A program made the translations under genes and the position numbers. Shown piece by piece: positions 13,530-37,072 of a stretch of 64,000 nt of DNA. The notes beneath the pieces were generated by a model. It searched no databases and was not told where the DNA came from. It was given only the letters and a program-made list of their open reading frames with translations. How positions within the stretch are numbered: the first letter of the stretch is position 1; every line of letters starts with the position of its first letter. The stretch lies in sequence record MK250029.1, one strand, 5' to 3'.

Positions 13530-13532
13530 CTT

Positions 13533-18544: not shown

Positions 18545-18625
18545 AAATTGATTAATAAATTATATCAATCAATTTTATTTACTATATTTATAGTATATTA
18601 TAATCAAAAAGTTTACTTTTTATCA

Positions 18626-20159: not shown

Positions 20160-20164
20160 ATTTC

Positions 20165-20377
20165 TTACTCTTCAATAAATTTTTTAATTGTTTTTGCCAT
20201 ATCAATAATTCTATCAAATTCATATCGGTCTCTATTAGCCTTCTCTGAATTTGCCCAATACATTGTATAAATCAATGCACGATCAGCTGCAGGTAACTTA
20301 CCAAAGTTATCGTCATTGATTAAATCATCAAATTTATTGTTCTTAAACTTAATATTTTTAGTTTCATTTGTATTCAT
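20165..20377 (-). CDS. Hypothetical protein
   Basis: 70-aa ORF. Confidence 0.5.
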   Translation of the reverse strand: MNTNETKNIKFKNNKFDDLINDDNFGKLPAADRALIYTMYWANSEKANRDRYEFDRIIDMAKTIKKFIEE

Positions 20378-20399
20378 ATAATTTATATATCAATTTATA

Positions 20400-20612
20400 T
20401 TATTTGTTTTCATTATTATTAATAACTTTAAACTTATCAGTATCAGGAATAATGGCTAAACTACCCCATGTTCCATGAAGCTGTCCAATACTATCGATAA
20501 ATTGAACAACACCTTCACGTCCAATATATGAGTTTACAACTGTATCATAACCACAATCATCAACCCATAAAATTTTAATAGTATCTCCTATCTTTACGTT
20601 TTCTTGTTCCAT
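20400..20612 (-). CDS. DUF4314-like small protein
   Basis: IGDTIKI..DD...G.EGVVQFIDSIGQLHGTWGSLAIIPDTDKF pattern. Confidence 0.6.
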   Translation of the reverse strand: MEQENVKIGDTIKILWVDDCGYDTVVNSYIGREGVVQFIDSIGQLHGTWGSLAIIPDTDKFKVINNNENK

Positions 20613-20694
20613 AACAAATCTTATTTAAACATTATATAACGAAGATACATATTTTATATTAAAAAAGAAAGGATACTAACTTAAATTAGTATCC

Positions 20695-21081
20695 TTAATA
20701 TATTTTCCACTATTCAAAATGATTTCTTGTATCTAAATAAAATAAATTAGTTTCATTCTTATATGCTTCCTGTTCAAATGATATATTTCTATATGCTTTA
20801 TGCGAAAATCTATCTTTTGTAAATAATACACGCCATAACCATTCAAAGAAATATATTATATAGAATATAATACCACCTATATACTATTGAAGACACAATG
20901 GTAAAAAACATGCAAAATCTTTCATTTGTTCAGTATGTATAGACTCATGATTTAATATTTTTTCTTTATATCTAAGAATCTATAATTTATATGCATATTC
21001 TTTTCTGACAAATAATGTACCGAAAAGATTAATAGCAATAAAACCCTATACCGGTATAATACTATTATAAACAATTTTCAT
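20695..21081 (-). CDS. Membrane protein with HExxH motif (128 aa, code 15)
   Basis: ATG 21081 to TAA 20695 with 4 TAG. FIAINLFGTLF, NHESIHTEQ, ISFEQEAY and a hydrophobic segment. Confidence 0.6.
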
Positions 21082-21098
21082 TTTATTAAATTATCCTT

Positions 21099-21833
21099 TT
21101 AATTATTTATTACTTGTTCTGTTTTTAACTCAATAATTATATCTTCTTTTATAAATAAAACATTATTATCATCTATATCTAAATATTCAATATTTTTAAT
21201 AGTATTCACAAAATTATGAACAAACGTATTTAATATAGATATATCTGTATCTTCTATTCTAAATAGAAATTTAGATAATTCTGGATATGCTAATGATATT
21301 TCTTTCTTTGTAAAATATTCATCACCATTTATTAAGCCTAAACATTGTCCAGATTGAAATGCAATTAATTTTAATATATCTTCTTTTGACATATTATTAT
21401 TTAATGTTGTGAAATCTATTGTTGTTAAATCAATATTTAATAATGTATTTAATCTACAATCAAAGTCACTACGTAATGCGAGTTTTACTTCTGATCTATA
21501 TTGAGATCTAGATAAATGAGATAAAATAGAACGTATAGAGCGTACTATCTTTAATGGTATATTGCGTTTTACATTTTTTGTAATTAATAAAGGAGTAGTC
21601 TGATGATGTAAAGAATATGTATTTTTAATAGCATTATTTAATTCATCTTTTGTTCCTTTATAACAATTAGAAATAATACCATCATCAATAGTTATTAAAT
21701 TTCTATTTTCATTTTTATCAGATGAACAAAATATCTTACATTCATTTAATGACGATAATTTATCTACAATATATGCTATGTCTATATCAGTTGAATCAGA
21801 TGAACCATATATATAATTTCCATATATTTCCAT
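21099..21833 (-). CDS. Pol-beta-superfamily nucleotidyltransferase-like protein
   Basis: YIYGSSDSTDIDIAYIV (hG[GS]..DxD) motif. Confidence 0.6.
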   Translation of the reverse strand: MEIYGNYIYGSSDSTDIDIAYIVDKLSSLNECKIFCSSDKNENRNLITIDDGIISNCYKGTKDELNNAIKNTYSLHHQTTPLLITKNVKRNIPLKIVRSIRSILSHLSRSQYRSEVKLALRSDFDCRLNTLLNIDLTTIDFTTLNNNMSKEDILKLIAFQSGQCLGLINGDEYFTKKEISLAYPELSKFLFRIEDTDISILNTFVHNFVNTIKNIEYLDIDDNNVLFIKEDIIIELKTEQVINN

Positions 21834-21838
21834 TTTAA

Positions 21839-22105
21839 TTATTCTAAATTAATTTGCTTAAATATTAAATAATTCTCTAAATCTATAAGAGTCTGTAACG
21901 ATTCATCAAAGTATTGATGATCATAATTTTCATCATTTCTTGCATGCAAATCTATTAAAGCTTCATGAAATCTTGAATCCGGATATTTCTCAAAATACTT
22001 CTTCAAAATTTCCAAAATTTTCATATTACTTTCATAACGTTTACTTCTGTAATATTCAAACATCTTCTGCTCTGACTCATTTCTTTTTATATCATTCTCT
22101 ACCAT
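21839..22105 (-). CDS. Hypothetical protein
   Basis: 88-aa ORF. Confidence 0.5.
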   Translation of the reverse strand: MVENDIKRNESEQKMFEYYRSKRYESNMKILEILKKYFEKYPDSRFHEALIDLHARNDENYDHQYFDESLQTLIDLENYLIFKQINLE

Positions 22106-22134
22106 AATTATAATTTATAAAATTAAATTATTAG

Positions 22135-22998
22135 TTATATACTTATATCTTTTATTTCTCTATCTAATGATATACATTTAGGATCTATATTTTCATATGT
22201 AAAAACACTATTCTATCCTTTTGGATCATCAAAGAATCTATACATAGTTGCTTTATTTCCTTCAATATAAGAACCTCTTGTTTTTAAATCTATCTTTAAT
22301 ATTACTGCATTATTTATATTTTGTTTATTCTTAAATAAATCTTTTGCATAACTTTCCAATTTATTATAATTATATTTTAAATAAAAATAAACTCTATCTG
22401 GATAATTATCACCATTAAATTGTTTAGATCTCGGTATTAACCCATTTTTCTATATTTTCTAATATGTTTTATAATCAGTTATATGGTATAAAATACCATC
22501 ACATTCCTTATATACATAATCAGTTAATTCATATATAAATTTTGGATGTAACATAAATACATAGTTATCATTCTATCGTTCTTTTACCGCAATAAAATAT
22601 CCTAAATTATAAATAATAGATTCTAGATTTATTAATGCATCTTTATTATATTCATCATCATAATCATCACAATATATATAAAAATATAATAATGGCGTTT
22701 TATCTTTCTATAATGGATTATAATCAATTCCAGCATGATGAATAAAACCATCAAAATATTTTTTTAGTTTAGATAATGCTTTATTCGGATCCATTGTATG
22801 TAATAAACCTTCATACAAATAATTTTGTTCACATTTTTTTAAGTAACTATATTGACATGTATCTTCTATACCATATTTTAGTTGATTATATGGCTAAAAC
22901 CATATATTATCTTTTGAATATTCTCTTAATGCATTATCATAATAATTAAATTTCATTTCAAATAAGGTTTTACCTATCAATCTATCATAACTATCCAT
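22135..22998 (-). CDS. Protein with C-terminal ADP-ribosyltransferase/Tpt1(KptA)-like domain (287 aa, code 15)
   Basis: ATG 22998 to TAA 22135, open only with TAG=Gln. LYHIT...IQKNGLIPRSK...YPDRVYF...VILKIDL...TYENIDP pattern. Confidence 0.5.
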
Positions 22999-22999
22999 A

Positions 23000-23989
23000 T
23001 TATTTGTGAAATTTATTATATATTATTTTCTATATATTCTACTTGAACTTCTTATAATTAGTCTATAATTCAAATATCATCGCTTGAAATTTATCTTTAT
23101 CATCCTATGTATATTCAGAAAATCTAGGTCTATAATCAAAATGATATTCGTTAATCTTATATTTTACTAAATGATATTTATAACATGAATAATTAAATAT
23201 TTCCATAGGACCAAAATTATTTGAAACATATATAGTTCTTAACATATTAATATATTTTTTCATTTCTGATAATAATGTTATATCATTCAATGAATCAATA
23301 TCTTCATCTTCAGATTTAACATGTTCATATACAGCATTTAATCTTGCACGCTCTTCCGATTTATTAAATATATAACATAATCTCTAACTTTTTTCAAAAT
23401 ACATATTATCCCATATAAATGGATTCGTTTCATCATCCGGTAATCTATTTTTCTCTGATTTTAAAACGTCTTTATCTTCCAATGCATACATTTCTCTTAT
23501 ATGTAAAAATTCATGCTTACATGAATCTCGCAATAACTATATATTATTCTATATCATATATGAATTTAGATAAATAACTATTTCATTATCATCTTTATCT
23601 TCACTTTTTATATATGAATAAGAAGTTGATTTTATATCATTTAATATATAAACATATATAGGATATTTTATATTTTCATTATCTACTTTTTTACATAAAG
23701 AATTTTTAATATTATAGTTATATCCTGTATATACTTTTATATCTCTACTTATATCTATATTATCTTTATAAATATCTTCTATAACATCTATAACTTCATC
23801 AAATACATCACTTATATGGTATTCTTCATTTATGATATTAAGCATGTCGTCATCATCATTATATTGATATTGTAATCTTCTTTCATACGACCAATTAAAA
23901 TTACCACGTAAATGTCTATAATTATTTTCATATAATTTTTTTTCATTATGAAAATAATATTCAACTAATTCCTTTACATATTTGTTCAT
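23000..23989 (-). CDS. HExxH metalloprotease-like protein (329 aa, code 15)
   Basis: Listed 23549..23989 and 23105..23290 are one frame joined via TAG. KHEFLH plus downstream EERARLNA. Confidence 0.55.
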
Positions 23990-24075
23990 ATTAAAACAAA
24001 ATTAATTTCAATATTTATAAAAAATAAAATAAGTTATAAAATTACAGGATAATTTTATAACTTATTGATAATTAG

Positions 24076-24165
24076 AGGAAGAAGTGGGATTCGAACCCAC
24101 GAACCGATATTAAACGATTTCGGGTTTTCAAGACCCGCGCATTCGACCAGCTCTGCCATCCTTCC
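24076..24165 (-). tRNA. tRNA-Ser(TGA)
   Basis: GGAAGGA/TTCTTCC; CGGGT-CT TGA AA-ACCCG; long variable arm; GGTTCGAATCC. Confidence 0.92.
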
Positions 24166-24307
24166 AAATAAAAAATTAGGATTTATATTCTGTGAGAATC
24201 CTTTAACTCAATACCAATACGATGGTCTCCAAGACTTTCCATTAAATAAATTTAATGTTCTTGTAGTTACGATTCTATATCATAGTAATATAGACTATTA
24301 ATAATTG

Positions 24308-24378
24308 TTGCAACTAACGGAATCGAACCGCTTACTCTCTCGCATGATGAGAATGTGTTGCCATTACACCAAGATGCA
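24308..24378 (-). tRNA. tRNA(CAT), atypical (A32, acceptor mismatch)
   Basis: TGCATCT/AGTTGCA; TTCTC-AT CAT GC-GAGAG; GGTTCGATTCC. Confidence 0.6.
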
Positions 24379-24500
24379 TGCAGAGTTTTATCGACCGCTT
24401 ATTATCTCTGTCATTCATATTTCCCCATTTATAATATTACTTTATAGATACACAATCGCGAACAGTTATCTATATTCATAAAATAAACGTATCATACTAG

Positions 24501-24574
24501 TTGCGCACTCCTGAACTCGAATCAGGGACCTCCAGGTTATGAGCCTGGCGAGCTACCAACTGCTCCAAGGCGCG
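24501..24574 (-). tRNA. Initiator-like tRNA-fMet(CAT)
   Basis: CGCG start with C1 mismatch; GAGCAGTTGGTAGCTC D-arm; CCAGG-CT CAT AA-CCTGG. Confidence 0.8.
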
Positions 24575-24918
24575 ATATATAAAAACATAAAAATAATAAT
24601 GAATTCATAGATGGATTCCTGACTACCATCAAACCTCATTACATATTAAGCACATTATTCAGTCACTACAAGTTAGTTCATGACGCTAACTTTTTATGTA
24701 GGAAGGATTGATTACCTTCAAAGGCTACAGACATCATTCCATTAAAACGATTTGACCTTTCTTACGTCACTCACAGTTGGCCAACTGTGGTTATTTTAAC
24801 CTTATGCTTCTTAATATTGATTACTCTAAATCATATCTTTTCAGATATAACCTAAATGCCTTATTTACTGTCCACAAATTATTCAGCAATATAAAAACAT
24901 TATTAAGTTATGTTATTG

Positions 24919-24990
24919 AGCTCCGAGTCGGATTCGAACCAACGACCTGCTCATTACAAGTGAGCTGCACTACCACTGTGCTATCGGAGC
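24919..24990 (-). tRNA. tRNA-Thr(TGT)
   Basis: GCTCCGA/TCGGAGC; GCTCA-CT TGT AA-TGAGC. Confidence 0.93.
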
Positions 24991-25070
24991 ATAAATTTTA
25001 TTAACTTATTATTTATCTAATTTACTTTAAAAATTAATAATAAATCAAAAAAATATTTCATAATTATTTG

Positions 25071-25151
25071 TACCTTCACTCGGACTCGAACCGAGACGTA
25101 ATTAAACCTAGCTCCTTAGGCTAGTGACTATACCAATTCGTCTATGAAGGT
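25071..25151 (-). tRNA. tRNA-Leu(AAG), A34 anticodon
   Basis: ACCTTCA/TGAAGGT; CTAGC-CT AAG GA-GCTAG; class II arm; A73. Confidence 0.88.
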
Positions 25152-25226
25152 ATTAAAATTAGTTTCATAAAGAAACTTTTTATTTAATAACGTAAATTTA
25201 AAATAATTTATTTTTAACTATTTTAG

Positions 25227-25300
25227 TAGTGCGTACCGGGATCGAACCGGTGAAATACCAGCGTGAAAAACTGGCGACTTAACCACTTGTCAAACGCACC
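25227..25300 (-). tRNA. tRNA-Glu(TTC)
   Basis: GGTGCGT/ACGCACT; CCAGT-TT TTC AC-GCTGG. Confidence 0.92.
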
Positions 25301-25383
25301 AAATTTTTTTAAAATACATTATATTATATATAACTTTTTAAATAAAGTCTATATATTTATTAAAAATATTTTCAAAATATTTG

Positions 25384-25487
25384 TGGGAACAACAGGATTC
25401 GAACACTGTGACGTAAGATCATTTCAACCGGTTTGTAAATACAACCCACTTACCATGGGTCTCTCACACCAACGAGAAGGTATTCCC
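25384..25487 (-). ncRNA. Aberrant tRNA-like RNA (104 nt)
   Basis: GGGAATA/TGTTCCC acceptor, TCTCG/TGAGA stem, ACCCA-TGGTAAG-TGGGT hairpin (G at position 33), very long variable region, bulged T-arm with TTCGAAT. Confidence 0.5.
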
Positions 25488-25492
25488 AAATA

Positions 25493-26143
25493 TTATAATT
25501 TATTTATATATTCCTTTAATTCTTTCGCTTTATATGGTAATTCATATTTTTTACACCATTTCTTTATAGCATTACCAGAAATACCATATAATCTTCCAAT
25601 ATTTTCAAATGTAATATATTTCCTAAATAATTCTATTAACTCTTCTTTTGAAGGAATAATATAATTTTTATTGGTTTTTATATTATCAGATATTTTATTA
25701 TACTAACTAATTATAGAATTGTCTTTAAATTTATATATTAAATTATTAACAGCATTATCATCTTTTATAATTTCTGTTGGACATTCTAGTAAATTACTAT
25801 GTATTTCTCGATGACAATTAGAACATACTAATACACATTTATCTAATTCAGTTTTTACTTTATTCCAACTTCTAGTATAACCTCTACTTCCTATTGCAAA
25901 ATCTTTCTATTCAGGATTAATATGATGAAATTCTAATGCTGAAATACATTTATTATAACCACAACATTGACATCTATTCCCTTTATATGCTAATGCTAAT
26001 AGTTTTATATGATCTCTTCGTTTCTAAACATATTCAGACTAACATTTCATGCATTTCCAATGAATTGAATTATCATAAAAATACTATTTAAATAAAGTAT
26101 TCCCATGCTTTTTGCATATACGATATTCTTTTATATCACTCAT
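25493..26143 (-). CDS. HNH homing endonuclease with C-terminal HTH (216 aa, code 15)
   Basis: CQCCGY...ALEFHHINP...CVLVCSNCHREIH; 5 TAG. Confidence 0.8.
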
Positions 26144-26147
26144 ATTG

Positions 26148-26221
26148 CGCTTCGGAATGGACTCGAACCATTGACTTTCTGATTAACAGTCAGACGTTCT
26201 AACCAACTGAACTACCGAAGC
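26148..26221 (-). tRNA. tRNA-Asn(GTT)
   Basis: GCTTCGG/CCGAAGC; TCTGA-CT GTT AA-TCAGA; G73. Confidence 0.94.
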
Positions 26222-26625
26222 AAATATTGAATAGTTTATCTTCGGACACTATTCATAATTATTAAAATTCAGTCATATACTTACCGAGAATTATATATGC
26301 ACTATATCATGAAAGTTTATTCATAATGGCACTACTTATCATGATTAAAACCATATTCAACTTTGGTAACTAATATTCATATAGGAAAAATATCTTACCA
26401 TCTCATCTTAAATATATGGTTGAATAACATATATTCATAATTATTTTTTAGAACCTATATTAAAATCAAAAAATGCATATCATTATTATAAGAAATAATT
26501 AAAACTTATAATAAAGTCTCGAGCTATGCGCAATATCTTTATAAAAAATGTAAATATAAAACAGATAATACTGAATAACATATACATTTTATAACTGTTT
26601 CATACATTTATAACCATTGTAATTG

Positions 26626-26713
26626 TGATCCCACCAGGACTCGAACCTGGAAGTCCTTTTACGGAACACAGTTTAGAAGACTGTTGAGGTCATCCATTAC
26701 TCTTTATGGGACC
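26626..26713 (-). tRNA. tRNA-Arg(TCT) with long variable arm
   Basis: GGTCCCA/TGGGATC; ACAGT-CT TCT AA-ACTGT; 17-nt variable region GTTCCGTAAAAGGACTT. Confidence 0.8.
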
Positions 26714-26745
26714 TAAATATCAACATAGATATGTTAAATAAGTTG

Positions 26746-26819
26746 CGGTACGTACGAGATTCGAACTCGTGACTTCTACAGTGACAGTGTAGCGCTCTGA
26801 CCAACTGAACTAACGCACC
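26746..26819 (-). tRNA. tRNA-Asp(GTC)
   Basis: GGTGCGT/ACGTACC; CTACA-CT GTC AC-TGTAG; G73. Confidence 0.94.
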
Positions 26820-26822
26820 AAA

Positions 26823-27467
26823 TTAAATATTTTTATTTAAATATTGTTCAATTTTTTCTTTATTATTTTCATACCATCCTAACTATCTATTACATACAGA
26901 ACATAATAAACCTCTAAATTTTAATGTTTCATGATTATGATCAATACATAAATGCTTAGGTGCACTTTTTGATTTCCACTTTACACAATCATCTATTGTT
27001 CTTCCACAAATTTCACATGTTTTATGTTCTTCTCTATATTTTTCTAATTCATATTTAGTAATATCTAATATATCTCCATTTCGCATTTTTACTTTATCTG
27101 TAAACTATTTTGATATATATACCGGTTTATTACCATTATTACAAATAGAATTATATCTATTAGGATTTTCTTTACAATACATCATATGATATTTAAGGCC
27201 ATATTCAGTATATTCTTTACCACAAAATTCACATTTTACAAGTTTCTAATTACTAAAACGACCATCCTAATCTTCTTTAAATTTAATAGAATTTTTTAAA
27301 CTAGTAGATATTTTATCTTTCGTTTCTTGCGTCACTATATGAGAATTTGCACATGAACGAGAACAATATTTTTTATATTTTCCTTTTTGATAATTATTTT
27401 CTGTACATTCTATCTCAAACTATTTTCCACATTTTTTACATTCTATTACATATTTTTTTAATTCCAT
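26823..27467 (-). CDS. Endonuclease VII-type His-Me finger homing endonuclease (214 aa, code 15)
   Basis: N-terminal Zn-finger repeats (CKKCG, CSRSCAN, CEFCG); C-term CEICG...LCIDHNHETLKFRGLLCSVCN. Confidence 0.78.
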
Positions 27468-27708
27468 AAAAGATTCACTATTTTTTCAGAAGTCATTTAT
27501 ATATTAAGTATTTGAGTTATTAAATATATTCCAAAAATATATTAATCACTTTGTAAACATTATTATTATAAAAATAAGTTTGCTGTATTGACTTCCATAT
27601 TCATAAACAAATCTCATTAAACACTTACATTTCTTACTAATAAAAGTCTCATTGTAAGTCAAATACTTCAATTATTATTTATGAATTATTATATTATTTA
27701 AATTTGTG

Positions 27709-27783
27709 TGGGCCCAGTAGGACTTGAACCTACGACCTTCAGATTATGAGTCTGCTGCTGCTAACCGTCTGAGCTATAGGCCC
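27709..27783 (-). tRNA. tRNA-Ile2/Met(CAT)
   Basis: GGGCCTA/TGGGCCC; GCAGA-CT CAT AA-TCTGA; A73. Confidence 0.88.
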
Positions 27784-27850
27784 AAATAATATATTTTTAT
27801 ATTATGTAATTAAAATATCTATATTATTAATATTAAAATTTAATTTATAG

Positions 27851-27923
27851 TGTTCCGTACGAGACTCGAACTCGTTACCCCGATATTAAAAGTATCGTGC
27901 TCTGCCAGATGAGCTAACGGAAC
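27851..27923 (-). tRNA. tRNA-Lys(TTT)
   Basis: GTTCCGT/ACGGAAC; CGATA-CT TTT AA-TATCG. Confidence 0.93.
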
Positions 27924-27933
27924 CGCATATTAA

Positions 27934-28752
27934 TTACATAACCTAATATAATTTATCTAATCGTTCATTATATCTCCAAAATTGACAATGTAATTTATTT
28001 ATAATATTATTCTAACGAATTATATCTTTATCTGATAAAATATTATTATATACATCTTTATAATGTTTAGGTTCATCATATTCAAATACAATATTTTTTT
28101 CTTTATCATATCCATCAAGAAAATAACCTAAAATCTCACATTCACCACCATTTCCGTAATACTATAAATTCCAGTTATTTTCTTTATTTAATTTTTCTAT
28201 ATATTCTCCAGAATTTTTATTAAATCGTGGATTGTGAAATCCTTTATTCTTTTTCAAATATTCAATTGCACCTAATCGCTATTTATATTTATGATCTTCT
28301 GTATGATGTGTACCTAAATTATAGGGTATATTTTTACCAGACATATAATTCTATCTAATTGTAATTGATTGCTATTTTACGCTATCACTTGTTTTTATAG
28401 TTAAACCTTTATTCCATGCAATATGTCCTTTTGTTGCTCCATTATTGCCATGATGTATTTCTCTATTAGGATTCATATGACAATATCTTTCATGATATTT
28501 TATACCATAAATTGAATATAAATTATTACAAAACTAACAATTAACTTTCTAACAATTAATTTTCTTTATCTTAAAATCTTTCTATTTAAACTATAAATCA
28601 ATATTATATTTTTCAACTATTATTTTTAAATAATTTATATTTCCTGAATTCTAATAACAATTTAACTATCGCAAACAATCATTATATGATGTACAATTAT
28701 TTAATTTCTAAATAATTTCATTATCACTAATCTATTTAATATTATTTTTCAT
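27934..28752 (-). CDS. Homing-type endonuclease, C-terminal PD-(D/E)XK/Vsr-like domain (272 aa, code 15)
   Basis: Over 10 in-frame TAG. AWNKGLT and LGTHHTE NUMOD-like repeats; YFLDGYDKEKNIVFEYDEPKH. Confidence 0.7.
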
Positions 28753-28837
28753 GTTTTCAAAGAACTAAATACATAATATTATATGTAAAACTTAAAATAA
28801 AGTCTATTTTTAATAGATTATTTTTTAAATTATTTTG

Positions 28838-28911
28838 TTGGGTGAGTGAGACTTGAACTCACGACCTCTTGCTTATCAGGCAAGCTATCTAACCAGCTGA
28901 TATACCACCCA
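28838..28911 (-). tRNA. tRNA-Ile(GAT)
   Basis: TGGGTGG/TCACCCA; CTTGC-CT GAT AA-GCAAG. Confidence 0.92.
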
Positions 28912-28916
28912 AAATT

Positions 28917-29179
28917 AAAACAAGTAGATTTACGAGACACAGCTTCTTCACCCTTTATAAAGGAAACTCGCTATTAGGCACTTGCGCTGTTTTACGAAGT
29001 TGTTGTGTGTCAACTTATGGCTTCTCACGAAATTTGCTGCTCTTCACATCTATGATCGAAATCAAACCAATTCTTTTCAATAATTGACCTGTAACCCTTA
29101 TCAGTTCTTCAGTATATAACATAAGCTAGCATTACTATACACTTACTCATTATTATAATCAGAAGTCTATACTTGTTTT
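28917..29179 (-). ncRNA. Candidate structured ncRNA (~260 nt) between tRNAs
   Basis: Closing stem AAAACAAGTA/TACTTGTTTT; GC-rich interior with no credible ORF. Confidence 0.35.
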
Positions 29180-29182
29180 TAG

Positions 29183-29265
29183 TAGAGATAAAGGGACTCG
29201 AACCCTTACACTTCAACAGTATATGCTCCTAAGGCATACGTGGCTACCAATTACACCATATCTCT
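29183..29265 (-). tRNA. tRNA-Leu(TAG)
   Basis: AGAGATA/TATCTCT; TATGC-CT TAG GA-GCATA; class II arm. Confidence 0.92.
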
Positions 29266-29271
29266 AAAATG

Positions 29272-29425
29272 TGGACCCTCGTGGAATCGAACCACGACCT
29301 CTGGATTGTCTCTATAAATGGGATCGAACCATTAATAATAACCATTAATATTATAGAGATTGATTTAATACAGTTTACTCTGTTAATTCAGTCCAGCGTA
29401 CAGGCACCAGCCATACGCAAGGTCC
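29272..29425 (-). tRNA. tRNA-Phe(GAA) interrupted by a ~79-nt anticodon-loop intron (29308..29386) containing a tRNA-like module
   Basis: GGACCTT/AGGGTCC; CTGGA-CT GAA [intron] AA-TCCAG; CGTGG-TTCGATT-CCACG. Removing the intron leaves 75 nt. An alternative junction would give GAC (Val). Confidence 0.75.
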
Positions 29426-29434
29426 ATTTATGTG

Positions 29435-29514
29435 TTGCGGGTCTTAGAGTCGCACTAAGTATCGCATAGCTTATGAGACTAGCATGATTTATATATCTGT
29501 TTCACTCCCCCGCA
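29435..29514 (-). tRNA. tRNA-Met(CAT), atypical
   Basis: TGCGGGG/ACCCGCA; CTAGT-CT CAT AA-GCTAT; long D-loop; T-loop TGCGACT. Confidence 0.7.
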
Positions 29515-30415
29515 ATATTATATTGTTATTTTTTAAATAATTTATAAAAATATTAAACTATTCATTTACAAATGCTTTATTATATTTTCCCATATCTTTT
29601 ATTACATATGGTATCCATCCACATTTTTTTATTTCATTTATTTTTATATTATCTCTATTCTATACTTGTTTTACTGAATGCTATTTTTTTATTTGCTCAT
29701 AATGCCATTTACCATTCCATAAAATTGCATATTTTATTTTTGGTAAAATTATATCTGCATCCCAACCATTAAAAATTGGTTTATTATGAAAAACATTTTC
29801 TATATTAAAAAAATTTTCGCATAATGTACAAAATAATTTTTCATTTTTTGAACGACGCTATTCACTTTGAATATTGCAACTATGCTTACCGCCATTAGAT
29901 ATTTTTTTAAGTGCATCTTGTGATAAAAAATCTCGAAAATGTAACTAATAATATTCTCTACATTTTTCTGAACACATTTTTCTTGTGCATCCTATAATAT
30001 CTTTAAAATAAAAATACTATTTATTACAAACTATACATGTATATAATTTTCTATTAGAATTATGATTCTTTTTAACACTAATAGATGTTTTCTTTTTTGA
30101 TTCTTCTGACCGCGGAGCTCTATGTAAATTTCCATATGCAGTAGCACATTGTTTATTACAAAATCTACCTGAGCCGTAAGAACCATCTATTACTTTACCA
30201 CAATTTTCACAATATAAAATTTTACTTTCTTCTAATTGTTTCTGTTGTAATAAATATTCATTCTTTATCTTATTATAATCGATATTTCTTTTCTATAATA
30301 ATCGTCTAAATGTATTATTAGTTAAATTATATTTTTTATCTACATATCTTAATGAATAATTACAATCCTTATATATCTATATTAATTCATTATTTGTTAA
30401 TCCTTTAATATTCAT
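29489..30415 (-). CDS. Homing-type endonuclease, PD-(D/E)XK-like (308 aa, code 15)
   Basis: CENCG..GSYGSGRFCNKQCA Zn finger; GWDADIILPKIKYAILWNGKWH. The 3' end overlaps the adjacent tRNA by ~26 nt. Confidence 0.7.
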
Positions 30416-30754
30416 AACTAAATTAATTAATAATTTATTGGACTAAAAACATACTCAAATAGTTACAAAAACTATTATGTTAATAATCTATTTAAATAAT
30501 AGGTAATTTTCACTGGTTATATTTAAACTATTCCATTGTCCTCAGCTATCTAACGTTCTTTTTCTTTCTAACCCAAATGATTAATTTTAAGGTAATTACG
30601 CTATTTAATAGCGTCACTGAGAGTTGTTTAGAACCTATACTTTATTTGTCAGATTTAGAGATTCGAACTCCTTAGACTTATTCCCGCGCGTCCTATTCAT
30701 CAATCTACCCATCTGTAGAAATACAGTTCCCACACTGTAAGTCACCTGTAATTG

Positions 30755-30825
30755 TTGGACTAGTAGGACTCGAACCTACTCAAATAGCGTCAAAGGCTAT
30801 TGTGCTGCCATTACACCATAGTCCA
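30755..30825 (-). tRNA. tRNA-Gln(TTG)
   Basis: TGGACTA/TAGTCCA; ATAGC-CT TTG AC-GCTAT. Confidence 0.93.
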
Positions 30826-30842
30826 GTATTTATATCACATAG

Positions 30843-31079
30843 CGGTTGTAATTGGATTCGAACCAATAATCTACCCACGACCTTGGGTCATTCTACGAGT
30901 AAACGATAATTTTTTTATTCATTATAAGCAAATAATTATAAAATCAATAACGGTATAAGAGCTTAAGATTAATACCATTCGATCCGCAAACATCTCATAT
31001 TAATTATTATAATATTCGAAATAAATATTCATTTTAATTACCAGTTTTAACTACTCCACCTGTTTTGAACTATACAACC
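30843..31079 (-). ncRNA. tRNA-like RNA (237 nt) with ~155-nt insertion in the D-loop
   Basis: GGTTGTA/TACAACC-G; GTTC..GAAT D-stem split by an insert closed by GAGTA/TACTC; ACCCA-AGGTCG-TGGGT (6-nt loop); ATTGG-TTCGAAT-CCAAT. Confidence 0.55.
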
Positions 31080-31219
31080 ATATTATTAAAAATAGACGTT
31101 CCTATCTGATTTGCACAGCACCCTATACCATAATGATATAGATTCTAACTATTAAACTATCAGAACATTAAATATACTTAATAACTAGTATATAAAAATA
31201 TATCCTCTATTTTTATTTC

Positions 31220-31630
31220 TTAATTTGATGGATGATAATAATCTTTCCAATTATTAAATGTATTCTTTATTGATAAATTTTGTAAATATTCAACAGAATA
31301 ACATTTATTAGTATGTATTATTCTATGATGATTTGGACATACAATAATTAAATTTGAAACATTATCAGTTCCACCATTACATTTCTCAATTATATGATGA
31401 ATATCACATGTTGATTCATTCCAACCACATATTGCACAACCTATTTTAGAACGATTTAAAATCTTTGATATTGTTCTTTTTGAACAATCTAATATAGAAT
31501 TTATTTCTTGTTCTTTTGAATGTTTTCTATGTTGTTTACATTCATCACATCTTATATGCCTATCTTTACGGATTGCCTTATTAGTTAAAAAAGATTTTCC
31601 ACATATTTCACATATATACTAATATTCCAT
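31220..31630 (-). CDS. HNH endonuclease (136 aa, code 15)
   Basis: CAICGW...CDIHHIIEKCNGGTDNVSNLIIVCPNHHRIIH; TAG at codon 4. Confidence 0.85.
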
Positions 31631-31637
31631 AATAATG

Positions 31638-31720
31638 TGGGTGAGGCAGGACTCGAACCTGCGAAGTCAAATGACAGCTGATTTACAGTCAGCCCCCTTT
31701 GCCACTCGGGACACTCACCC
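31638..31720 (-). tRNA. tRNA-Tyr(GTA)
   Basis: GGGTGAG/CTCACCC; GCTGA-CT GTA AA-TCAGC; class II arm. Confidence 0.95.
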
Positions 31721-32065
31721 AAATTAATGAAATATTTCGAAGAAATTGCATCTTCTAATAATCTTACAGCTTACCTTTTAGGTTTTTTAATAGCATGCCT
31801 GTTACTTCACAGGAACAAAATATTTCATTAAAAATTACCCGAAACATTCAATGTCGTCACAGTCACATCTATAGGATTTAAAAATAGATTCTAACCAGAA
31901 AGAGTTTGCTCTACATCATCAGATTTATTTTATATTTAGACTTAATAATAAATCCTACATACTTACCATATAACTCTTTTATTTAATAGTCATATAAATA
32001 CACTGCCTAATAATATAAGTATACAACTATTACTGTAATGTTTCACACAAGACGTTCCTTTTATA

Positions 32066-32965
32066 TTATTTTTTAAATATTATATCAAATTTTGAAAATA
32101 TATCATAATTTATTTTATTTGGATATTCTCCATATTTCTATGTCCATATATTAATCTTATTTTTTAATTCATCTAATGATATATCACATTTTATACTTTT
32201 TGATGCATTTAAGCTATGCTACATTAACTAACAATTTGCTGGATGTGATATTAAATAAGGATCTATTAATTCTTTATATCCTTCATTACGTGAAAATATA
32301 TGATCTCTAGAAACACCATTTAAATTATTACCTGCATTTTTTGGTTTATACCAGCCATATAATGTTATTTGATTAAAATCAAATTCTTTTGGATAACTAT
32401 TTAATGCAAATTTAAATTTACACTAATTATTATATAACTATTTTAAAGTTTTATTTTCAACACGATAACGGCTATTATGTGCACATGAATTACTACAAAA
32501 TTTCTATTTTCTTCTCTTACTTTCAAATACTTTTCCGCAATATTCACATATATGAATATGTGTTGCATGTATTGCACATGTTGTATTTGTTACATGTTTT
32601 GTATATTTTATATTATTACATTTATTTGATAATGTTTTAGAAATTTTCTAATTTTTCTAATTTAAATTTGTATGTGCATTCGTTAATTTTCTTGCGCACT
32701 ATGTTGAACATGTCTACTTATACTTATTTAATGCATACATATTTGGAGTAACATATACTTTATATTCATTATTACATATAACACAATTACATGTATATTC
32801 TTTACGTTTACGGTGATTATGCATTTTTTCTTTTGTATTCTAAAGTATTTCTTCATACTTTGGATTTTTATTACACCAACGTACATGATTTGCATATGAC
32901 TTTATATTCATATACTAAGTTTCTCCACAATAAGGACACTTCTTTTCAATTTTTAATAATTCCAT
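32066..32965 (-). CDS. HNH homing endonuclease with Zn-finger repeats (299 aa, code 15)
   Basis: CPYCG, CEYCG..FCSNSCA; VSRDHIFS...SHPANCQLMQHSLNASK; over 10 TAG. Confidence 0.75.
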
Positions 32966-33248
32966 ATTTTTTAACTTTATTTTTAAAAGGTGACTGGAAT
33001 CACCTTTATATTATATTATTTATTAATAATTAAATAAAGTTAGATAAACCTGGAATTCGTTTATCAAATGGTTCCAGCCATCTGTCCTTTATTTAATGTA
33101 TTAAATATTTCTCTGTTTTAAGAGTAATATTTATATTTGAAAAACATTATATTGTCTATTCAAATAATAAAAAATTGTTCACATAGGTAAATTTGAAACA
33201 CTAATTTTTAGATTTAACTTTACCATAACTAAACTATATGTGAACACA

Positions 33249-33326
33249 TGGTAGGTTATGAGGAACTCGAATCCCCGACCCTCTCCTTGTAAGGGAGATG
33301 CTCTAAACCGACTGAGCTAATAACCT
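33249..33326 (-). tRNA. tRNA-Val(TAC), CCA encoded
   Basis: AGGTTAT/ATAACCT-A-CCA; TCTCC-CT TAC AA-GGAGA. Confidence 0.94.
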
Positions 33327-33396
33327 AAACTAGTATACTGCTTTCCCAAGTGGTATACTATGAAATAATTCACAAATCCGATTTTATGAATTTAAA

Positions 33397-33572
33397 AATT
33401 AAATAGTTAATTAGGGTGGATTTGCACTTCCCTTACTCCATAGCTAAATGTTAATGATGGACCCTTCTTACTAATGAATAAAAGAAAATTGCGCAAGTTT
33501 TTATTCATTAATATGTTTAGTTCTACATAACGTAGCTCTCTACTTACCGTTAAACTTCGTTACTATTTAATT
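33397..33572 (-). ncRNA. Candidate structured ncRNA (~176 nt)
   Basis: 11-bp closing stem AATTAAATAGT/ACTATTTAATT; internal AATGAATAAAA/TTTTATTCATT and CTAC/GTAG hairpins. Confidence 0.35.
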
Positions 33573-33681
33573 AAAAACGTTTAAAAATATATTCAGAAAT
33601 TTAATATATATTCGCCTCGACGATACTATCTGAACATAGAAGGTACATCCTTTATACATACTAAATCATATTTTTAAATTG

Positions 33682-33845
33682 CGGGAATAGAGGGAATCGA
33701 ACCCACGCCCAGAGATTAGCTACATAAATTGGATTCGAACCAATTAAACTTTATAAAGTATGATACCCAACAGCATTATGTAGTTTAATTTAATCAGGTT
33801 GTTTCCTGTATACAGTCTCTTGCTCGACCTTCGAGCTATATTCCC
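33682..33845 (-). tRNA. tRNA-Asn(GTT) interrupted by a ~93-nt anticodon intron (33719..33811) containing a tRNA-like module
   Basis: GGGAATA/TATTCCC-G73; GCTC-GAAGGTC-GAGC; AGAGA-CT GT[intron]T AA-TCTCT. Removing the intron leaves 71 nt. An alternative junction would give GTA (Tyr). Confidence 0.75.
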
Positions 33846-34471
33846 AACTTTTGCATTAAGGTCAGCAAACCACACATCTCGCTGTCATATAAGCATCCAC
33901 GATTACTATCGTTCCATGTATACAACCATATCCAGCCTGTGCGAATATTTGTTCTATTTGGCTCGTGGCGATATTCTTTTCGAAAGCAATAGCAAATATT
34001 AAAAGGACTTTAATATTCTATAATATCGCCTGATGCACTTTGGACAAGCAGTATAATATAAGAAATCTTATATATAGCCTGATATATTTCAATCATATTT
34101 TTCTTTGGCAGCATCATTCTATAAATTCATATAATTATTGTTTTCTTCCTCACATAAGTAAAATACTTATGAAGTTACTTTTCAATAAAGTTCATAGTAT
34201 ATCTGATTAACTTTTCAGTAACAGAAACATTTATTATATGAATAATACTTATATTTGTCTATCAAAATTTCAAAGAACAATATATTTTTTAATTAACAAT
34301 ACAAAGATACATCTTTATTTTGAATTAAAAAAATATTCATTGAAATTTTTGAAATATTTTTTTGTTTATTATCAATATGTCAAAGAACTAAATGTTTGTT
34401 ATTTTATTAACAACACAAAGATACATTATATATTTCAAATAAAAAAATAAGTCTATAAAAAATTGATATTT

Positions 34472-34720
34472 TTATTTAATTTTTATAATTGTATCTTCTT
34501 TAATAGAACGTCTAATCCATCTCATTAGGATTATTGCTCTATCATAATGTGGTAAGAATGAAGCAGTTTCACCTACATCATGTTTATCTGATAAATCGAT
34601 TTCAAACTAATATACATGATTATCAGTTGATGTAATATTATAAACTGCAATTCCTCCAGCATTCATACAAACAAGGTCTGCTGCACCTTTAACTAAAATT
34701 TTTAAATCAATGTTTTCCAT
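34472..34720 (-). CDS. Hypothetical protein (82 aa, code 15)
   Basis: ATG 34720 to TAA 34472 with one TAG; ends ILMRWIRRSIK. Confidence 0.55.
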
Positions 34721-34743
34721 TTTTAATTAATTTTCTTTTTTAG

Positions 34744-34816
34744 TTGGGGTGGTGGGAGTTGAACCCACTACCAGAATTTTATAAGAATTCCACTCTAACC
34801 GTTGAGTTACACCCCA
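34744..34816 (-). tRNA. tRNA-Ile(TAT)
   Basis: TGGGGTG/CACCCCA; GAATT-CT TAT AA-AATTC; GGTTCAACTCC. Confidence 0.9.
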
Positions 34817-35006
34817 ATATGGGATGTTCCTAAATATAATACAACATTATATCATTAAACATATAGGAACATAATTTCTATTGTTAATCCTATATATAAT
34901 AATGTATATAAGATCAACAATTATAATATTCGATGCTTATGTATATGTCGTATTAAATTTGTCATAACTTTATTCTTATAAAATTTGTTTGTATTCTTTT
35001 AATTTG

Positions 35007-35097
35007 CACACAGAGAAGGATTCGAACCCTCGAACAGACTGTTAAATCCGTTATTGGTTTTGGAGACCAACTGCATCAACCACTCGCACATCTGTGT
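35007..35097 (-). tRNA. tRNA with CCA (Trp) anticodon and Ser-like class II body
   Basis: ACACAGA/TCTGTGT-G73; TTGGT-CT CCA AA-ACCAA; 7-bp variable stem AACGGAT/GTCTGTT. Confidence 0.82.
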
Positions 35098-35406
35098 ATT
35101 ATGTATATAATAAATGAAAAAATCTTGAAACTCTCTGATTATGCAGAATGTTTCAAGATTTTAATATATTAATCGTTATTTATATTACACTATTCAACGT
35201 ATTAACTATTCACAATATCTCTTAACATACATGCACAACGTACTTGTTCATACCAATTAAATGAATCGGCATAAATATCCACGTTATTTTTATATATGTT
35301 ATTAAATTGTCTCATAGTTTTTTATCTTTTAAAATTATTTTCTTTATTATATATATCTAAATTTTTTTCAAAAGTCTTCATTTTTGAGAACTTTTTTCAA
35401 AAAATA

Positions 35407-36117
35407 TTAATTTTTTTTAATTTTCTTTATAGTAATCTTTATTTTCTCTATTAATGATTCTAATTTATGAATACGATCACCTGTATAAAAAGCAATATAA
35501 TCATCCAATAGTTTCTTTTCTGTAGACATTACCATAATTCGATTTTTAAAAAATTCACCATAATTTCTATTTGGTTCAAATTCTGTACAATGTTCTACAC
35601 TATAATCATGATCATATATTTTATATGTTGATTCTGTTCTACCTGCACATATTTTTGGTTCCCATTCATATATAGATTTATGAATTAAGCAACACTGATA
35701 TGGTTTTACATCTTTATCATCAGATATACAGCGCCAATATGTTCTAAAATTATTATATAAACTTCTTTGCATACCTGCTGCATAATGTCTAGATTTATAT
35801 GCAATACCTCTATCTACAATAATCTTATTATCTTTATATTCTGATTCTGAATTTCTTTCTAATACCACATAATAAACTGGAATATCTTTATAATTCACAT
35901 TATAATTATGACTTATTAATGATAGCTCTTTATCACCTGCATAACATTCAGGTGATAATAATCCATCTAATTTATATTCATTAAAATAATCTGGATAACT
36001 ATTTTTAAGGTCATCCAGATTATTTGAGTATATAAAATCAAGAGAATCAAATCGATTATGTAATTTATCATTTACAAATAAACAGAATCTCCATCTATAT
36101 AATTCGTTAATATCCAT
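35407..36117 (-). CDS. Hypothetical protein
   Basis: 236-aa ORF. Confidence 0.6.
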   Translation of the reverse strand: MDINELYRWRFCLFVNDKLHNRFDSLDFIYSNNLDDLKNSYPDYFNEYKLDGLLSPECYAGDKELSLISHNYNVNYKDIPVYYVVLERNSESEYKDNKIIVDRGIAYKSRHYAAGMQRSLYNNFRTYWRCISDDKDVKPYQCCLIHKSIYEWEPKICAGRTESTYKIYDHDYSVEHCTEFEPNRNYGEFFKNRIMVMSTEKKLLDDYIAFYTGDRIHKLESLIEKIKITIKKIKKN

Positions 36118-36130
36118 ATAAAATATTCAT

Positions 36131-36694
36131 TTAATCCATATTTAACTTATCTACAATAATACCACACTCTTCAAGAAGTTTGATACCAGCATCACTTTTA
36201 TAGTTATTTAAATAAACAACACGTGATACTTCAGACTGTACCAAAAGTTTTGCACAATGAATACATGGAGATAATGTTACATATACAGTTCCACCTTTTG
36301 CAGATGAATTATATTTTGCAAGTTTTGTAATTGCATTACTTTCTGCATGCAATGTAATATCTTTTGTAATAAGTCTAAAACCAGGCATCATACCTTTATT
36401 GATATTACGATACTGCACAAGAATCTCTTCCTGTTTTTTCTTATCATGATAAGATTCAGCAGTTTCAAGTGTTGTATGTTCACCTGTATTAATATTATAG
36501 ATTTCTTCACAAATATTCGGCATACCAATAGGCATACCATTAAAGCCCTGTGAAATAACCTGATCATCCTTTGAAACAACAATACAACCTACCTGTTTCT
36601 TAATAGCATATGACAAATTACTCATAGCAATAGCCATATTCATATATGCAACATCAAATTCATGCTGTCTTTCTTTAGATGATTTCTGTACCAT
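36131..36694 (-). CDS. dCMP deaminase
   Basis: VGCIVV...GFNGMP; HAESNAI; TLSPCIHCAK. Confidence 0.92.
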   Translation of the reverse strand: MVQKSSKERQHEFDVAYMNMAIAMSNLSYAIKKQVGCIVVSKDDQVISQGFNGMPIGMPNICEEIYNINTGEHTTLETAESYHDKKKQEEILVQYRNINKGMMPGFRLITKDITLHAESNAITKLAKYNSSAKGGTVYVTLSPCIHCAKLLVQSEVSRVVYLNNYKSDAGIKLLEECGIIVDKLNMD

Positions 36695-37072
36695 ATCTTT
36701 ATATTTTTAATTGTTTATTACTAAATTAACAATACAAAGATACATATTATTTTTGGATTAAAAAAATAATTTAAAACTTATTTTCAATACATTATTAAAT
36801 AAAATGTGGTCCAACCGATTTTCACAAACAGACTGGACCCGATAGTTAAAAATAAATTTTAAATTACGTTATTGATTATATTATTTATTATTAAAAACAT
36901 CAAAAGTTTAAGTTTTTAATAATTATTTTTTATAAATATTTCATTTTTTAATAAAGTAATTCTATATCTATATGAATATAATATACTTCATTCGTTTCAC
37001 AATCTTCCCATTTAAGTTTTGAAACTTTCTTTACTTTAACTGAATGATTATCCTTCAGTCTCAATGCATTCA

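Follow-up and report, generated by a model that had tools for sequence, protein, structure and literature searches.

How can a phage tRNA gene that is split inside its anticodon loop by a short insertion still give a tRNA, and how might that insertion be taken out? The question is raised by the tRNA-Phe(GAA) gene at positions 29272 to 29425 (minus strand) of the 64,000-nucleotide (nt) stretch of DNA analysed here, called the window below, which is from Prevotella phage Lak-C1 (100% identity to MK250029.1, near 460 kb). The insertion is a 79-nt intron that ends in a tRNA look-alike, and the same architecture is found in four tRNAs (Phe, Asn, Thr and Gly), in 12 distinct copies identified by empty-site comparison and structural scan. 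We consider it likely that these insertions are a real family of introns that are both spliced and mobile. To our knowledge, bacteria and their viruses are thought to have self-splicing tRNA introns only, and enzyme-dependent tRNA splicing is regarded as archaeal or eukaryal.

The interrupted tRNA-Phe gene

The gene lies in a minus-strand cluster in which ARAGORN counts 19 tRNAs, and it is not itself called by that program, with its intron option either on or off. Masked N stretches of the window start only at 49809, well away from it. Its parts are as follows (bp, base pairs).

29272-29425, minus strand: tRNA-Phe(GAA) gene including the intron, delimited from the sequence, with C74 next to it at 29271
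29387-29425, minus strand: exon 1, with the 5' strand of the acceptor, the D-arm, the 5' strand of the anticodon stem and loop bases C32 to A36; its 3' end is the stem strand CTGGA followed by CTGAA
29308-29386, minus strand: the 79-nt intron, TTAACAG...TATAGAGAC, 25% G+C, between tRNA positions 36 and 37 as placed by the empty-site alleles L006 and L010
29384-29386, minus strand: intron bases 1 to 3, TTA, with the 5' splice site immediately 5' of them
29370-29383, minus strand: hairpin P1, ACAG / AGTAAA / CTGT, 4 bp with an A-rich hexaloop
29360-29369, minus strand: A-rich single-stranded linker, ATTAAATCAA
29309-29359, minus strand: inner tRNA mimic, without an anticodon loop
29359-29352 paired to 29316-29309, minus strand: acceptor-like stem of the mimic, 8 bp, TCTCTATA/TATAGAGA
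Within 29351-29334, minus strand: central hairpin of the mimic, short, with a GG loop
29333-29317, minus strand: T-arm of the mimic, AATGG-TTCGATC-CCATT, with loop TTCGATC
29308, minus strand: terminal intron base, a single unpaired C, with the 3' splice site immediately 3' of it
29272-29307, minus strand: exon 2, opening AA-TCCAG, with A37, A38, the 3' strand of the anticodon stem, the variable loop, the T-arm, the 3' strand of the acceptor and A73 (29272)

The boundaries of the intron are fixed by alleles that lack it. The IMG/VR Lak contigs L006 (a 553-kb genome) and L010 carry the same tRNA-Phe with identical exons and an uninterrupted loop, CTGAAAA, and the boundaries are unambiguous because only the division CTGAA|79 nt|AA yields the loop of the empty allele; a shift of one base in either direction changes the product. 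The intron-less allele is a normal 75-nt tRNA-Phe, and its Lak-B2 copy is called tRNA-Phe(gaa) by ARAGORN. The initial annotation of this DNA, made from the sequence alone, had read the loop as CTGAA|AA split by 79 nt, which the minus-strand sequence and the empty sites bear out, and the hairpin, linker, 8-bp stem, T-arm and terminal C that it described are each found on the minus strand. It had also allowed for GAC at the spliced junction, and this alternative is very unlikely, since the empty-site alleles read CTGAAAA.

We note that directly upstream of tRNA-Phe, at 29432-29510 (minus strand), there is a degenerate tRNA-like stretch, GCGGGGG ... CTCATAA ... CCCGCA, that is called by no tool; at the matching site the B lineage has a normal tRNA-Met(CAT).

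The earlier record of Lak tRNA introns

The introns themselves are already published. Devoto et al. 2019 (Nat Microbiol, PMC6784885; preprint 10.1101/356790) listed "enigmatic introns" in Lak tRNAs in their Table S6, among them a Phe(GAA) intron that is identical in A1, A2 and the cholera cohort and further introns in Gly(TCC), Thr(TGT) and "Tyr(GTA)"; they remarked that the Thr intron possibly encodes a tRNA itself and that Rfam gave no match, and they offered no mechanism (PMC6784885). The statement of the initial annotation, that tRNA introns are predicted in Lak phages and that no mechanism is described, was thus correct. The A1 Phe intron printed in Table S6 (PMC6784885) is the same as that of the window save for one T-loop base. 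The boundaries in that table are the 37/38 guess of tRNAscan, which in its eukaryote mode predicts the Phe intron, and the true Phe site is one base 5' of it. The published "Tyr(GTA)" gene is a tRNA-Asn(GTT) split at 35|36, as its empty allele reads CTGTTAA and its discriminator is G73. The B genomes have one intron according to Devoto et al. (PMC6784885), yet Lak-B1 has the Phe intron too.

The object is therefore the same as in that paper (PMC6784885); the common anatomy, the 5' hairpin module, the terminal-C rule, the mobility between paralogs and the mechanism are not in it, and the anatomy, exact boundaries, family and mobility are new here. In full-text searches of the literature, later Lak papers were found to mention only the existence of the introns, and nothing was found on their removal. 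For annotation, the consequence is that standard tRNA finders miss or mis-type such genes: the Phe gene is missed and the Asn gene is called Tyr or Ser.

A family of introns with a common plan

The four intron types differ in length and in the strains that carry them.

tRNA-Phe(GAA): 79 nt (86 nt in the B lineage), between positions 36 and 37; carried by C1, A1, A2 and B1; empty in L006, L010 and B2
tRNA-Asn(GTT): 93, 129 or 141 nt, between positions 35 and 36; empty in L012, L020 and L021 (the GGGAATA-type paralog in L020 and L021)
tRNA-Thr(TGT): 114 nt, between positions 36 and 37; carried by A1, A2 and L020; empty in C1
tRNA-Gly(TCC): 84-87 nt, between positions 36 and 37; carried by A2, G002 and L082; empty in A1

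Two further genes of the window belong to this comparison.

33681-33845, minus strand: tRNA-Asn(GTT) with a 93-nt intron (33811-33719) between positions 35 and 36, called Ser(gct) by ARAGORN; the empty-site allele L012, which reads CTGTTAA, fixes the 35|36 boundary
24918-24990, minus strand: tRNA-Thr(TGT), intron-less in C1, the empty site of the 114-nt Lak-A1/A2 member

All of the members are built alike. The intron begins with W-T-A (W-U-A in the RNA), of which T2 and A3 are invariant in 12 of 12 distinct copies, and continues with P1, a hairpin of 4-5 bp with an A-rich hexaloop whose 5' strand begins CA (preceded by an extra A in Phe), and with an A-rich linker of 10-12 nt that is present in all four types and has the 3' end AAAT[T/C]AA(A). 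The mimic that follows has an 8-bp acceptor-like stem and a 5-bp T-stem with a TTCG T-loop, which make a 13-bp stack in every member, and a variable middle of 18-79 nt, part of which looks like a D-arm with GG in Thr and Asn. In each of the 12 copies, whichever the type, the intron ends in C, and exon 2 starts directly after it; across the copies, the 5' splice site is preceded by A, U or C. Removal of the intron always restores a 7-nt anticodon loop. In all types P1 is 3 nt downstream of the 5' site and a single base separates the 13-bp stack from the 3' site, and because these distances to the intron helices are fixed despite insertion at 36|37 in Phe, Thr and Gly and at 35|36 in Asn, the cut sites must be set by the intron and not by the tRNA.

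The mimic has several features of a tRNA, namely an acceptor stem stacked on a T-arm and a UUCRANY-type T-loop, in every copy. It lacks those of a decoder, as there is no 7-nt anticodon loop and the stack is 13 bp instead of 12 (7+5), so that it is a mimic and not a decoding tRNA; its centre is a short hairpin with a 4-nt loop in Phe and is made of long hairpins in Thr and in the B1 Asn copy.

Three observations on parts of these introns may be added. The 27-nt 5' module, hairpin and linker, occurs alone in a near-identical copy at L019:9606-9660 (IMGVR_UViG_3300030098_006058), just upstream of the start of an open reading frame (ORF); this contig came up through an IMG/VR match to the junction motif and was rejected as an extra intron, as it has no tRNA mimic. 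With 4 occurrences in the window against 9 expected, the linker motif ATTAAATYAA shows no enrichment and so is not a general phage signal. In a contig of the metatranscriptome run X7 the 93-nt Asn intron (33718-33811) is replaced by 484 other letters, indicating that a far longer variant exists.

Conservation of the intron helices

Pairing and covariation were measured on an alignment of six distinct, well-aligned members that was fitted to the structural model, which biases the result somewhat. In it the helix cells are paired in 102 of 102 cases (100%), compared with 72% in shuffles and 21-48% with slid partners, and 14 of the 17 pairs are changed on both sides; none of 500 shuffles reached these values. 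The covarying pairs are spread over P1 (3 of 4), the acceptor-like stem (8 of 8) and the T-stem (3 of 5), and RNAalifold, run on the same fitted alignment, gives the same three helices plus the central hairpin. The Lak-B1 Phe copy is a clear single case, since at 86% identity it keeps every helix through compensatory changes. Covariation across Lak genomes had been named as a check in the initial annotation, with random decay of the insert as the contrary outcome; the helices are kept, and no random decay is seen among the copies compared.

The family can also be recovered by search. R1, a covariance model trained only on the Phe copies, scores the Phe intron of the window at 99.6 bits; it also recovers the Asn intron over its full length (39.4 bits, E = 9e-5) and, at 43.4 bits, the Gly intron. 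A second model (R2), run genome-wide, gives 2-3 confident members per Lak genome, each of them in an anticodon loop. Neither R1 nor R2 recovers the Thr intron cleanly, and Thr was placed in the family by a structural descriptor. In its strict form this descriptor matched these introns alone in 759 kb searched on both strands, including ~400 kb of unrelated viral DNA, and of the 45 matches to a loose sequence pattern in IMG/VR only two, both Lak Gly introns, have the structure, compared with 0 of 43 unrelated ones. Members outside the six-member alignment were parsed by script; MAFFT alignments of all types, which put the helices out of register, and the R1 alignment of the long L020 Asn copy, which was mis-aligned, were not used. 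A single-sequence fold of the whole pre-tRNA gives the outer cloverleaf arms and the inner stem (z = -2.95), and P1 is predicted as well.

Comparison with known intron classes

Rfam at its usual thresholds finds nothing at the tRNA-Phe gene. Intron_gpI is not matched in 17000-37000 with a cut-off of E = 1 or, with one of E = 10, in the gene by itself. On 29260-29440 neither intron families nor ribozyme families, small self-cleaving ones (hammerhead, HDV-like, twister, hatchet, pistol and hairpin) included, have a match at E up to 10; a hammerhead-type core, CUGANGA...GAAA, was not seen by eye. The weak matches that do occur at the gene are to tRNA-like families alone, including a mascRNA-like one at 29274-29325. 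A group I intron is ruled out by the length of 79-141 nt, the terminal C in place of an omega-G, the variable base before the 5' site (A, U or C, where group I introns have a U-G pair) and the lack of an Rfam match. A group II intron, with its six domains, domain V among them, and several hundred nt, is ruled out by the same length and lack of a match.

It is highly improbable that these are bulge-helix-bulge introns of the archaeal or eukaryal type, or degenerate group I introns. The anticodon-loop location is indeed that of most such introns, and the eukaryote-mode prediction by tRNAscan points the same way, but the 3' site is 1 nt from the 13-bp helix, in which the bases beside it are locked, and a 4-bp helix linking the two sites, with a 3-nt bulge on either side, is not present. 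The insertion positions are 36|37 or 35|36 and not 37|38, and the splicing endonuclease tRNA_int_endo (PF01974) was not found in the three Lak genomes searched (Lak-A1, Lak-B1 and G002), in a search whose control found it in four archaea. A degenerate group I intron is further opposed by the 79-nt size, the terminal C and the lack of an Intron_gpI match. The initial judgement that the element is neither a group I or II nor a bulge-helix-bulge intron thus stands, on size, terminal base, Rfam and helix layout.

Selection on the interrupted tRNA genes

The Phe exons are identical between intron-bearing and intron-less alleles, and in the outer T-stem of Phe a C-G pair in C1 is T-A in B1, both of which bear the intron. 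In the anticodon stem of tRNA-Gly two pairs differ between A2, which has the intron, and A1, which is empty, and both are compensated across the intron. Such compensatory changes in the exons argue, as indirect evidence, for continued selection on the tRNA and hence for removal of the intron; as judged from these sequences, the intron-bearing genes appear to be under tRNA-type selection.

These exon data also bear on the idea that the insertions are unspliced, selfish, tRNA-derived DNA elements that knock out the tRNA genes, with the host supplying the tRNAs. We regard this as unlikely. It would agree with the lack of RNA evidence of splicing (see below), with the presence/absence polymorphism, which shows that strains cope without the intron, and with the treatment of the genes as broken by standard tRNA finders; it does not explain why exon stems are kept by compensatory changes, even across the intron in tRNA-Gly, why exons are the same as in intron-less alleles and removal always restores a 7-nt loop, or why helices of the intron RNA covary, for which a dead DNA insert has no need.

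The 3' splice site

The 3' splice site resembles the 3' ends of ordinary Lak tRNAs. In the window (17975-35097, minus strand) 20 of 21 ordinary tRNA genes encode N73-C74 followed by A or T, and thus only the first C of CCA; the full CCA is encoded only by tRNA-Val (33249-33326, minus strand). This rule cannot be due to chance, because the C content of the genome is ~12%. In 13 of ~19 ordinary tRNAs the base at -1, usually T, is able to pair with N73, which gives a 13-bp stack plus an unpaired C, and the mimic in the intron ends in the same way, with 13 bp, C and then AAU, AAA or UAA, the commonest starts of Lak trailers. The mimic has the layout of an RNase Z substrate, an acceptor/T stack, an unpaired base and a trailer that is not CCA. 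RNase Z is the enzyme that serves CCA-less tRNA genes, and it leaves a 5'-phosphate on the downstream piece. Since the 3' end of the mimic has the layout of a Lak pre-tRNA 3' end, an endonuclease that removes trailers should cut at the 3' splice site, and this cut is plausibly the work of a tRNA 3'-end endonuclease.

The 5' splice site

The 5' cut requires a different account. The inner acceptor helix, at which an RNase P site is expected, begins 27-31 nt downstream of the 5' splice site across the family (27 nt in Phe), so that mimicry of tRNA ends accounts for one cut of two. The initial proposal that tRNA mimicry recruits end-processing enzymes to the boundary of the intron therefore agrees with the 3' layout and leaves the 5' boundary, 27 nt upstream of the RNase P site, unexplained. 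RNase P was rejected as the maker of the 5' cut itself: an acceptor-like helix beginning with intron base 1 was looked for, but W-U-A can add no more than 2-3 weak A-U pairs to P1, and does so inconsistently. The 5' module, whose hairpin the initial annotation had described without interpreting it, is under selection, because P1 covaries in three of its four pairs and U2 and A3 never change. The preference of RNase E, RN|WU, fits the 5' site in Phe, Thr and Asn.

The conservation at this end might instead be that of a catalytic RNA, a new and very small self-cleaving or self-splicing type with the hairpin and the tRNA-like fold as its core. It would cut at one boundary or at both, with the exons joined by a ligase or by the RNA. 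The strong conservation, which includes invariant single-stranded bases (W-U-A, the linker, the T-loop and the terminal C), would suit such an RNA, as would the fact that no protein has been identified for the 5' cut. The conserved parts are, however, ordinary tRNA features, no Rfam ribozyme is matched at E up to 10, the length of the central region ranges from 18 to 79 nt, and the last base is C and not the G of group I introns. A self-cleaving RNA would also leave 2',3'-cyclic phosphate and 5'-OH ends, and the phage has no RtcB for these, though the host family has one. We judge a ribozyme to be distinctly unlikely here.

Candidate enzymes

An enzyme that could join the exons is encoded in the window.

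15712-16395, minus strand: ATP-dependent RNA ligase gene, 227 amino acids (aa); PF09414, E = 5e-8, and phrog_548 'RNA ligase', E = 2e-13

No solved relative of this ligase was found by sequence search. PF09414 has 4-6 matches each in Lak-A1, Lak-B1 and G002. RtcB was not found in these three genomes, with a Bacteroides control genome positive, and the Lak genomes searched gave no RNase Z and no RNase E/G (the latter with the Bacteroides control genome again positive); they do have one CCA-adding enzyme. With RNase Z, RNase E/G and a splicing endonuclease all lacking in the phages, the cuts would depend on host enzymes. ATP-dependent ligases need 3'-OH and 5'-phosphate ends, and RNase Z, RNase P and RNase E leave such ends. 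The ligase at 15712-16395 is a candidate for the exon joiner.

We note that the region beside the ligase gene, 12165-15261 (minus strand), contains nucleotide-metabolism genes without recoded TAG: a SAICAR synthetase-like gene, a cytidylyltransferase-like gene, a Ham1-type NTP pyrophosphatase gene, a kinase-like ORF and a HisG-like gene.

A proposed pathway for intron removal

From the structures and the enzyme inventory we infer splicing, with the following cutting enzymes, end chemistry and ligase. In the first step a host trailer endonuclease, most likely RNase Z, would cut after the terminal C, making the 3' splice site and leaving a 5'-phosphate on exon 2. In the second, another endonuclease would cut 3 nt upstream of P1 in the W-U-A context and leave a 3'-OH on exon 1; RNase P possibly also frees the mimic from the 5' module. 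In the third, a phage ATP-dependent RNA ligase would seal the anticodon loop, much as T4 Rnl1 does after anticodon-nuclease damage. We put the chances that such a three-step protein pathway removes the intron at about even.

Several points weigh against this pathway or against splicing in general. In four metatranscriptomes, all examined as assembled contigs, neither spliced RNA nor excised intron was found. One contig, in X7, retains the Phe intron, and an exact 79-nt skip in X9 is read as an intron-less allele and not as a product of splicing, because its 800-nt contig extends over neighbouring genes and shows a strain deletion of 1056 nt. The textbook cut of RNase Z falls after N73 of a 12-bp stack, and here it would fall after the first unpaired base that follows a 13-bp stack. 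For the 5' cut, an RNase E/G-type enzyme is a guess, prompted by a site that is single-stranded, A/U-rich and adjacent to a hairpin with U at +2, and the RN|WU motif is absent from the Gly 5' site (CC|AUA). The ligases are not specific to the introns, because G002, which has few introns (neither Phe nor Asn), has ligases too; the earlier suggestion that a phage ligase joins the exons has in its favour the PF09414 gene at 15712-16395 and the lack of RtcB, and this lack of specificity against it. Lastly, the Phe intron by itself is not unusually stable (z = -0.9), a modest value that is expected because its G+C content is 25%.

A different view of the same processing signals is that the mimic itself is the product, released by RNase P and RNase Z from the tRNA gene as a processing cassette, to act for instance as a decoy against tRNA-targeting defences or as a primer or handle in the spread of the element, with the rejoining of the exons secondary or partial. 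The determinants for RNase P, RNase Z and CCA addition are all present and there is no anticodon loop, mascRNA is made in this way and has a weak look-alike match here, and the phage has a CCA-adding enzyme. Such a purpose does not account for the conserved 5' hairpin module, for the exactly restored loop or for the constant placement in anticodon loops. As the main reason for the element it seems improbable to us, though it is compatible with removal by the three-step pathway, and once released the mimic may also be functional itself.

With the three-step pathway, a puzzle that has been on record since 2019 becomes a testable model with exact splice sites, a 3' signal (the 13-bp stack and terminal C), a 5' signal (W-U-A and the hairpin module) and a short list of enzymes. 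If it is true, tRNA mimicry alone can render an insertion harmless, RNA-repair ligases are tied to routine gene expression, and there is an explanation for the persistence of large tRNA sets in megaphages despite invasion by mobile elements.

Mobility of the family

The Asn introns indicate that the family moves. C1 has two tRNA-Asn(GTT) paralogs, whose exons are identical at 44 of 75 positions, compared with 90 of 93 for the introns. The intron is in the GGGAATA-type paralog in C1, A1 and A2, and that paralog is empty in L020 and L021; it is in the GCTTCG-type paralog in B1, B2 and L020, and that one is empty in C1, A1, A2 and G002. The empty C1 copy of the second type is also in the window.

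26147-26221, minus strand: GCTTCG-type tRNA-Asn(GTT), intron-less in C1

The family is mobile, because the Asn intron thus occupies different paralogs in different Lak lineages. More generally, the presence and absence of the four introns is patchy across strains and the empty sites are precise. In the B lineage (L017:16846-17926 of Lak-B1 compared with L018 of Lak-B2) the intron-bearing Phe allele is a replacement cassette of ~1 kb that starts in the anticodon stem; besides the intron it contains a different exon 2 and an ORF of 288 aa that weakly matches an endonuclease (phrog_945, E = 5e-4).

No ORF is present within the intron. Between the tRNA genes of the window there are four minus-strand ORFs, 25493-26143, 26823-27467, 27934-28752 and 32066-32965, with 5-14 in-frame TAG codons each, which match HNH or endonuclease VII families, two of them clearly and two weakly; these are likely free-standing homing endonucleases. 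As DNA, the introns probably spread by recombination, between strains and between paralogous tRNA genes with the same loop, perhaps with help from the HNH-type endonucleases of the tRNA cluster. The ORF beside tRNA-Phe in C1, 29489-30415 (308 aa, no family match), is missing from one intron-bearing and one intron-less strain. A search for relatives with the neighbouring protein returned only two close ones.

We note that contigs of other Lak strains skip 29442-30497 and ~32055-33104 exactly, which marks these as insertion/deletion cassettes; the skips remove ORFs 29489-30415 and 32066-32965.

Other tRNA-like elements

Several other tRNA-like elements are present in these genomes. An RNA-like element of ~238 nt at 30842-31080 (minus strand) has a 7-bp acceptor, GGTTGTA/TACAACC, followed by G73 and C74, a T-loop TTCGAAT and no anticodon loop; C1, A1, B1/B2, L010 and L021 all have it at the same length, its acceptor and T stems have compensatory changes, and Rfam gives it only a partial tRNA match (24.7 bits). 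Outside the main cluster, 11137-11207 and 11254-11359 (minus strand) are tRNA-like, with an acceptor-like stem and a T-arm with loop TTCGAAT, and in its intron mode ARAGORN fuses the two, giving a dubious 'tRNA-Thr(cgt)' whose intron would be 143 nt long. The genes for tRNA-Trp(CCA) (35006-35097, 92 nt) and tRNA-Arg(TCT) (26625-26713, 89 nt), both on the minus strand, have long variable arms that are unusual for these isotypes; the Lak-A1 copy of tRNA-Arg is 74 nt long. In the second tRNA cluster of Lak-A2 (L027:2473-2707) there are two tRNA-like genes of ~105 and 121 nt with odd anticodon regions and long extra arms, which have small 'introns' according to ARAGORN and match R1 and R2 weakly.

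Relationship to known systems

Archaeal and eukaryal tRNA introns are likewise short, removed by proteins (as we suppose for Lak), located in the anticodon loop and followed by ligation of the exons, and some are mobile. They differ in that they use a bulge-helix-bulge with EndA or TSEN, and then RtcB or Trl1, whereas the cut sites of the Lak introns are set by a tRNA-like fold and a hairpin. The end chemistry would differ as well, being likely 3'-OH/5'-phosphate with an ATP-dependent ligase in Lak and 2',3'-cyclic phosphate with RtcB in the archaeal/eukaryal type. The group I introns of cyanobacterial tRNA-Leu and Azoarcus tRNA-Ile share with those of Lak a bacterial-type tRNA, the anticodon-loop location, a patchy distribution and mobility, but are ribozymes of at least 200 nt with a P1-P9 core and a terminal G, while the Lak introns are 79-141 nt long, tRNA-shaped and end in C.

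With regard to spread, collaborative homing (in T4-like cyanophages, and segB in the T4 tRNA cluster) also combines an intron without an ORF, precise empty sites and HNH- or EndoVII-like ORFs nearby; unlike in those systems, no Lak endonuclease has been linked to the insertion sites.

Closer parallels are found in RNA processing and repair. Within longer transcripts, tRNA-shaped elements recruit RNase P and RNase Z, as in mitochondrial punctuation, MALAT1 mascRNA and the tRNA-miRNA transcripts of gammaherpesvirus 68. Such signals release flanks that are never rejoined, whereas the flanks of the Lak mimic are tRNA halves that need ligation, and the 5' cut is away from the end of the mimic. In phage T4, Pnkp and Rnl1 act after PrrC cleavage, and there too a phage RNA ligase reseals an anticodon loop; Lak has several genes of ligase families, apparently Rnl2-like PF09414 enzymes, and T4 repairs damage whereas the break in Lak would be a programmed one. 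By analogy, the Lak intron in operation most resembles tRNA-like processing signals together with anticodon-loop repair of the T4 type, a combination that we do not know to have been described as a splicing pathway. We tentatively suggest that it could be a third route of tRNA splicing, and the first protein-dependent one in a bacterial system, in which a mobile intron disguised as a tRNA is taken out by end-trimming enzymes and the exons are sealed by a repair ligase.

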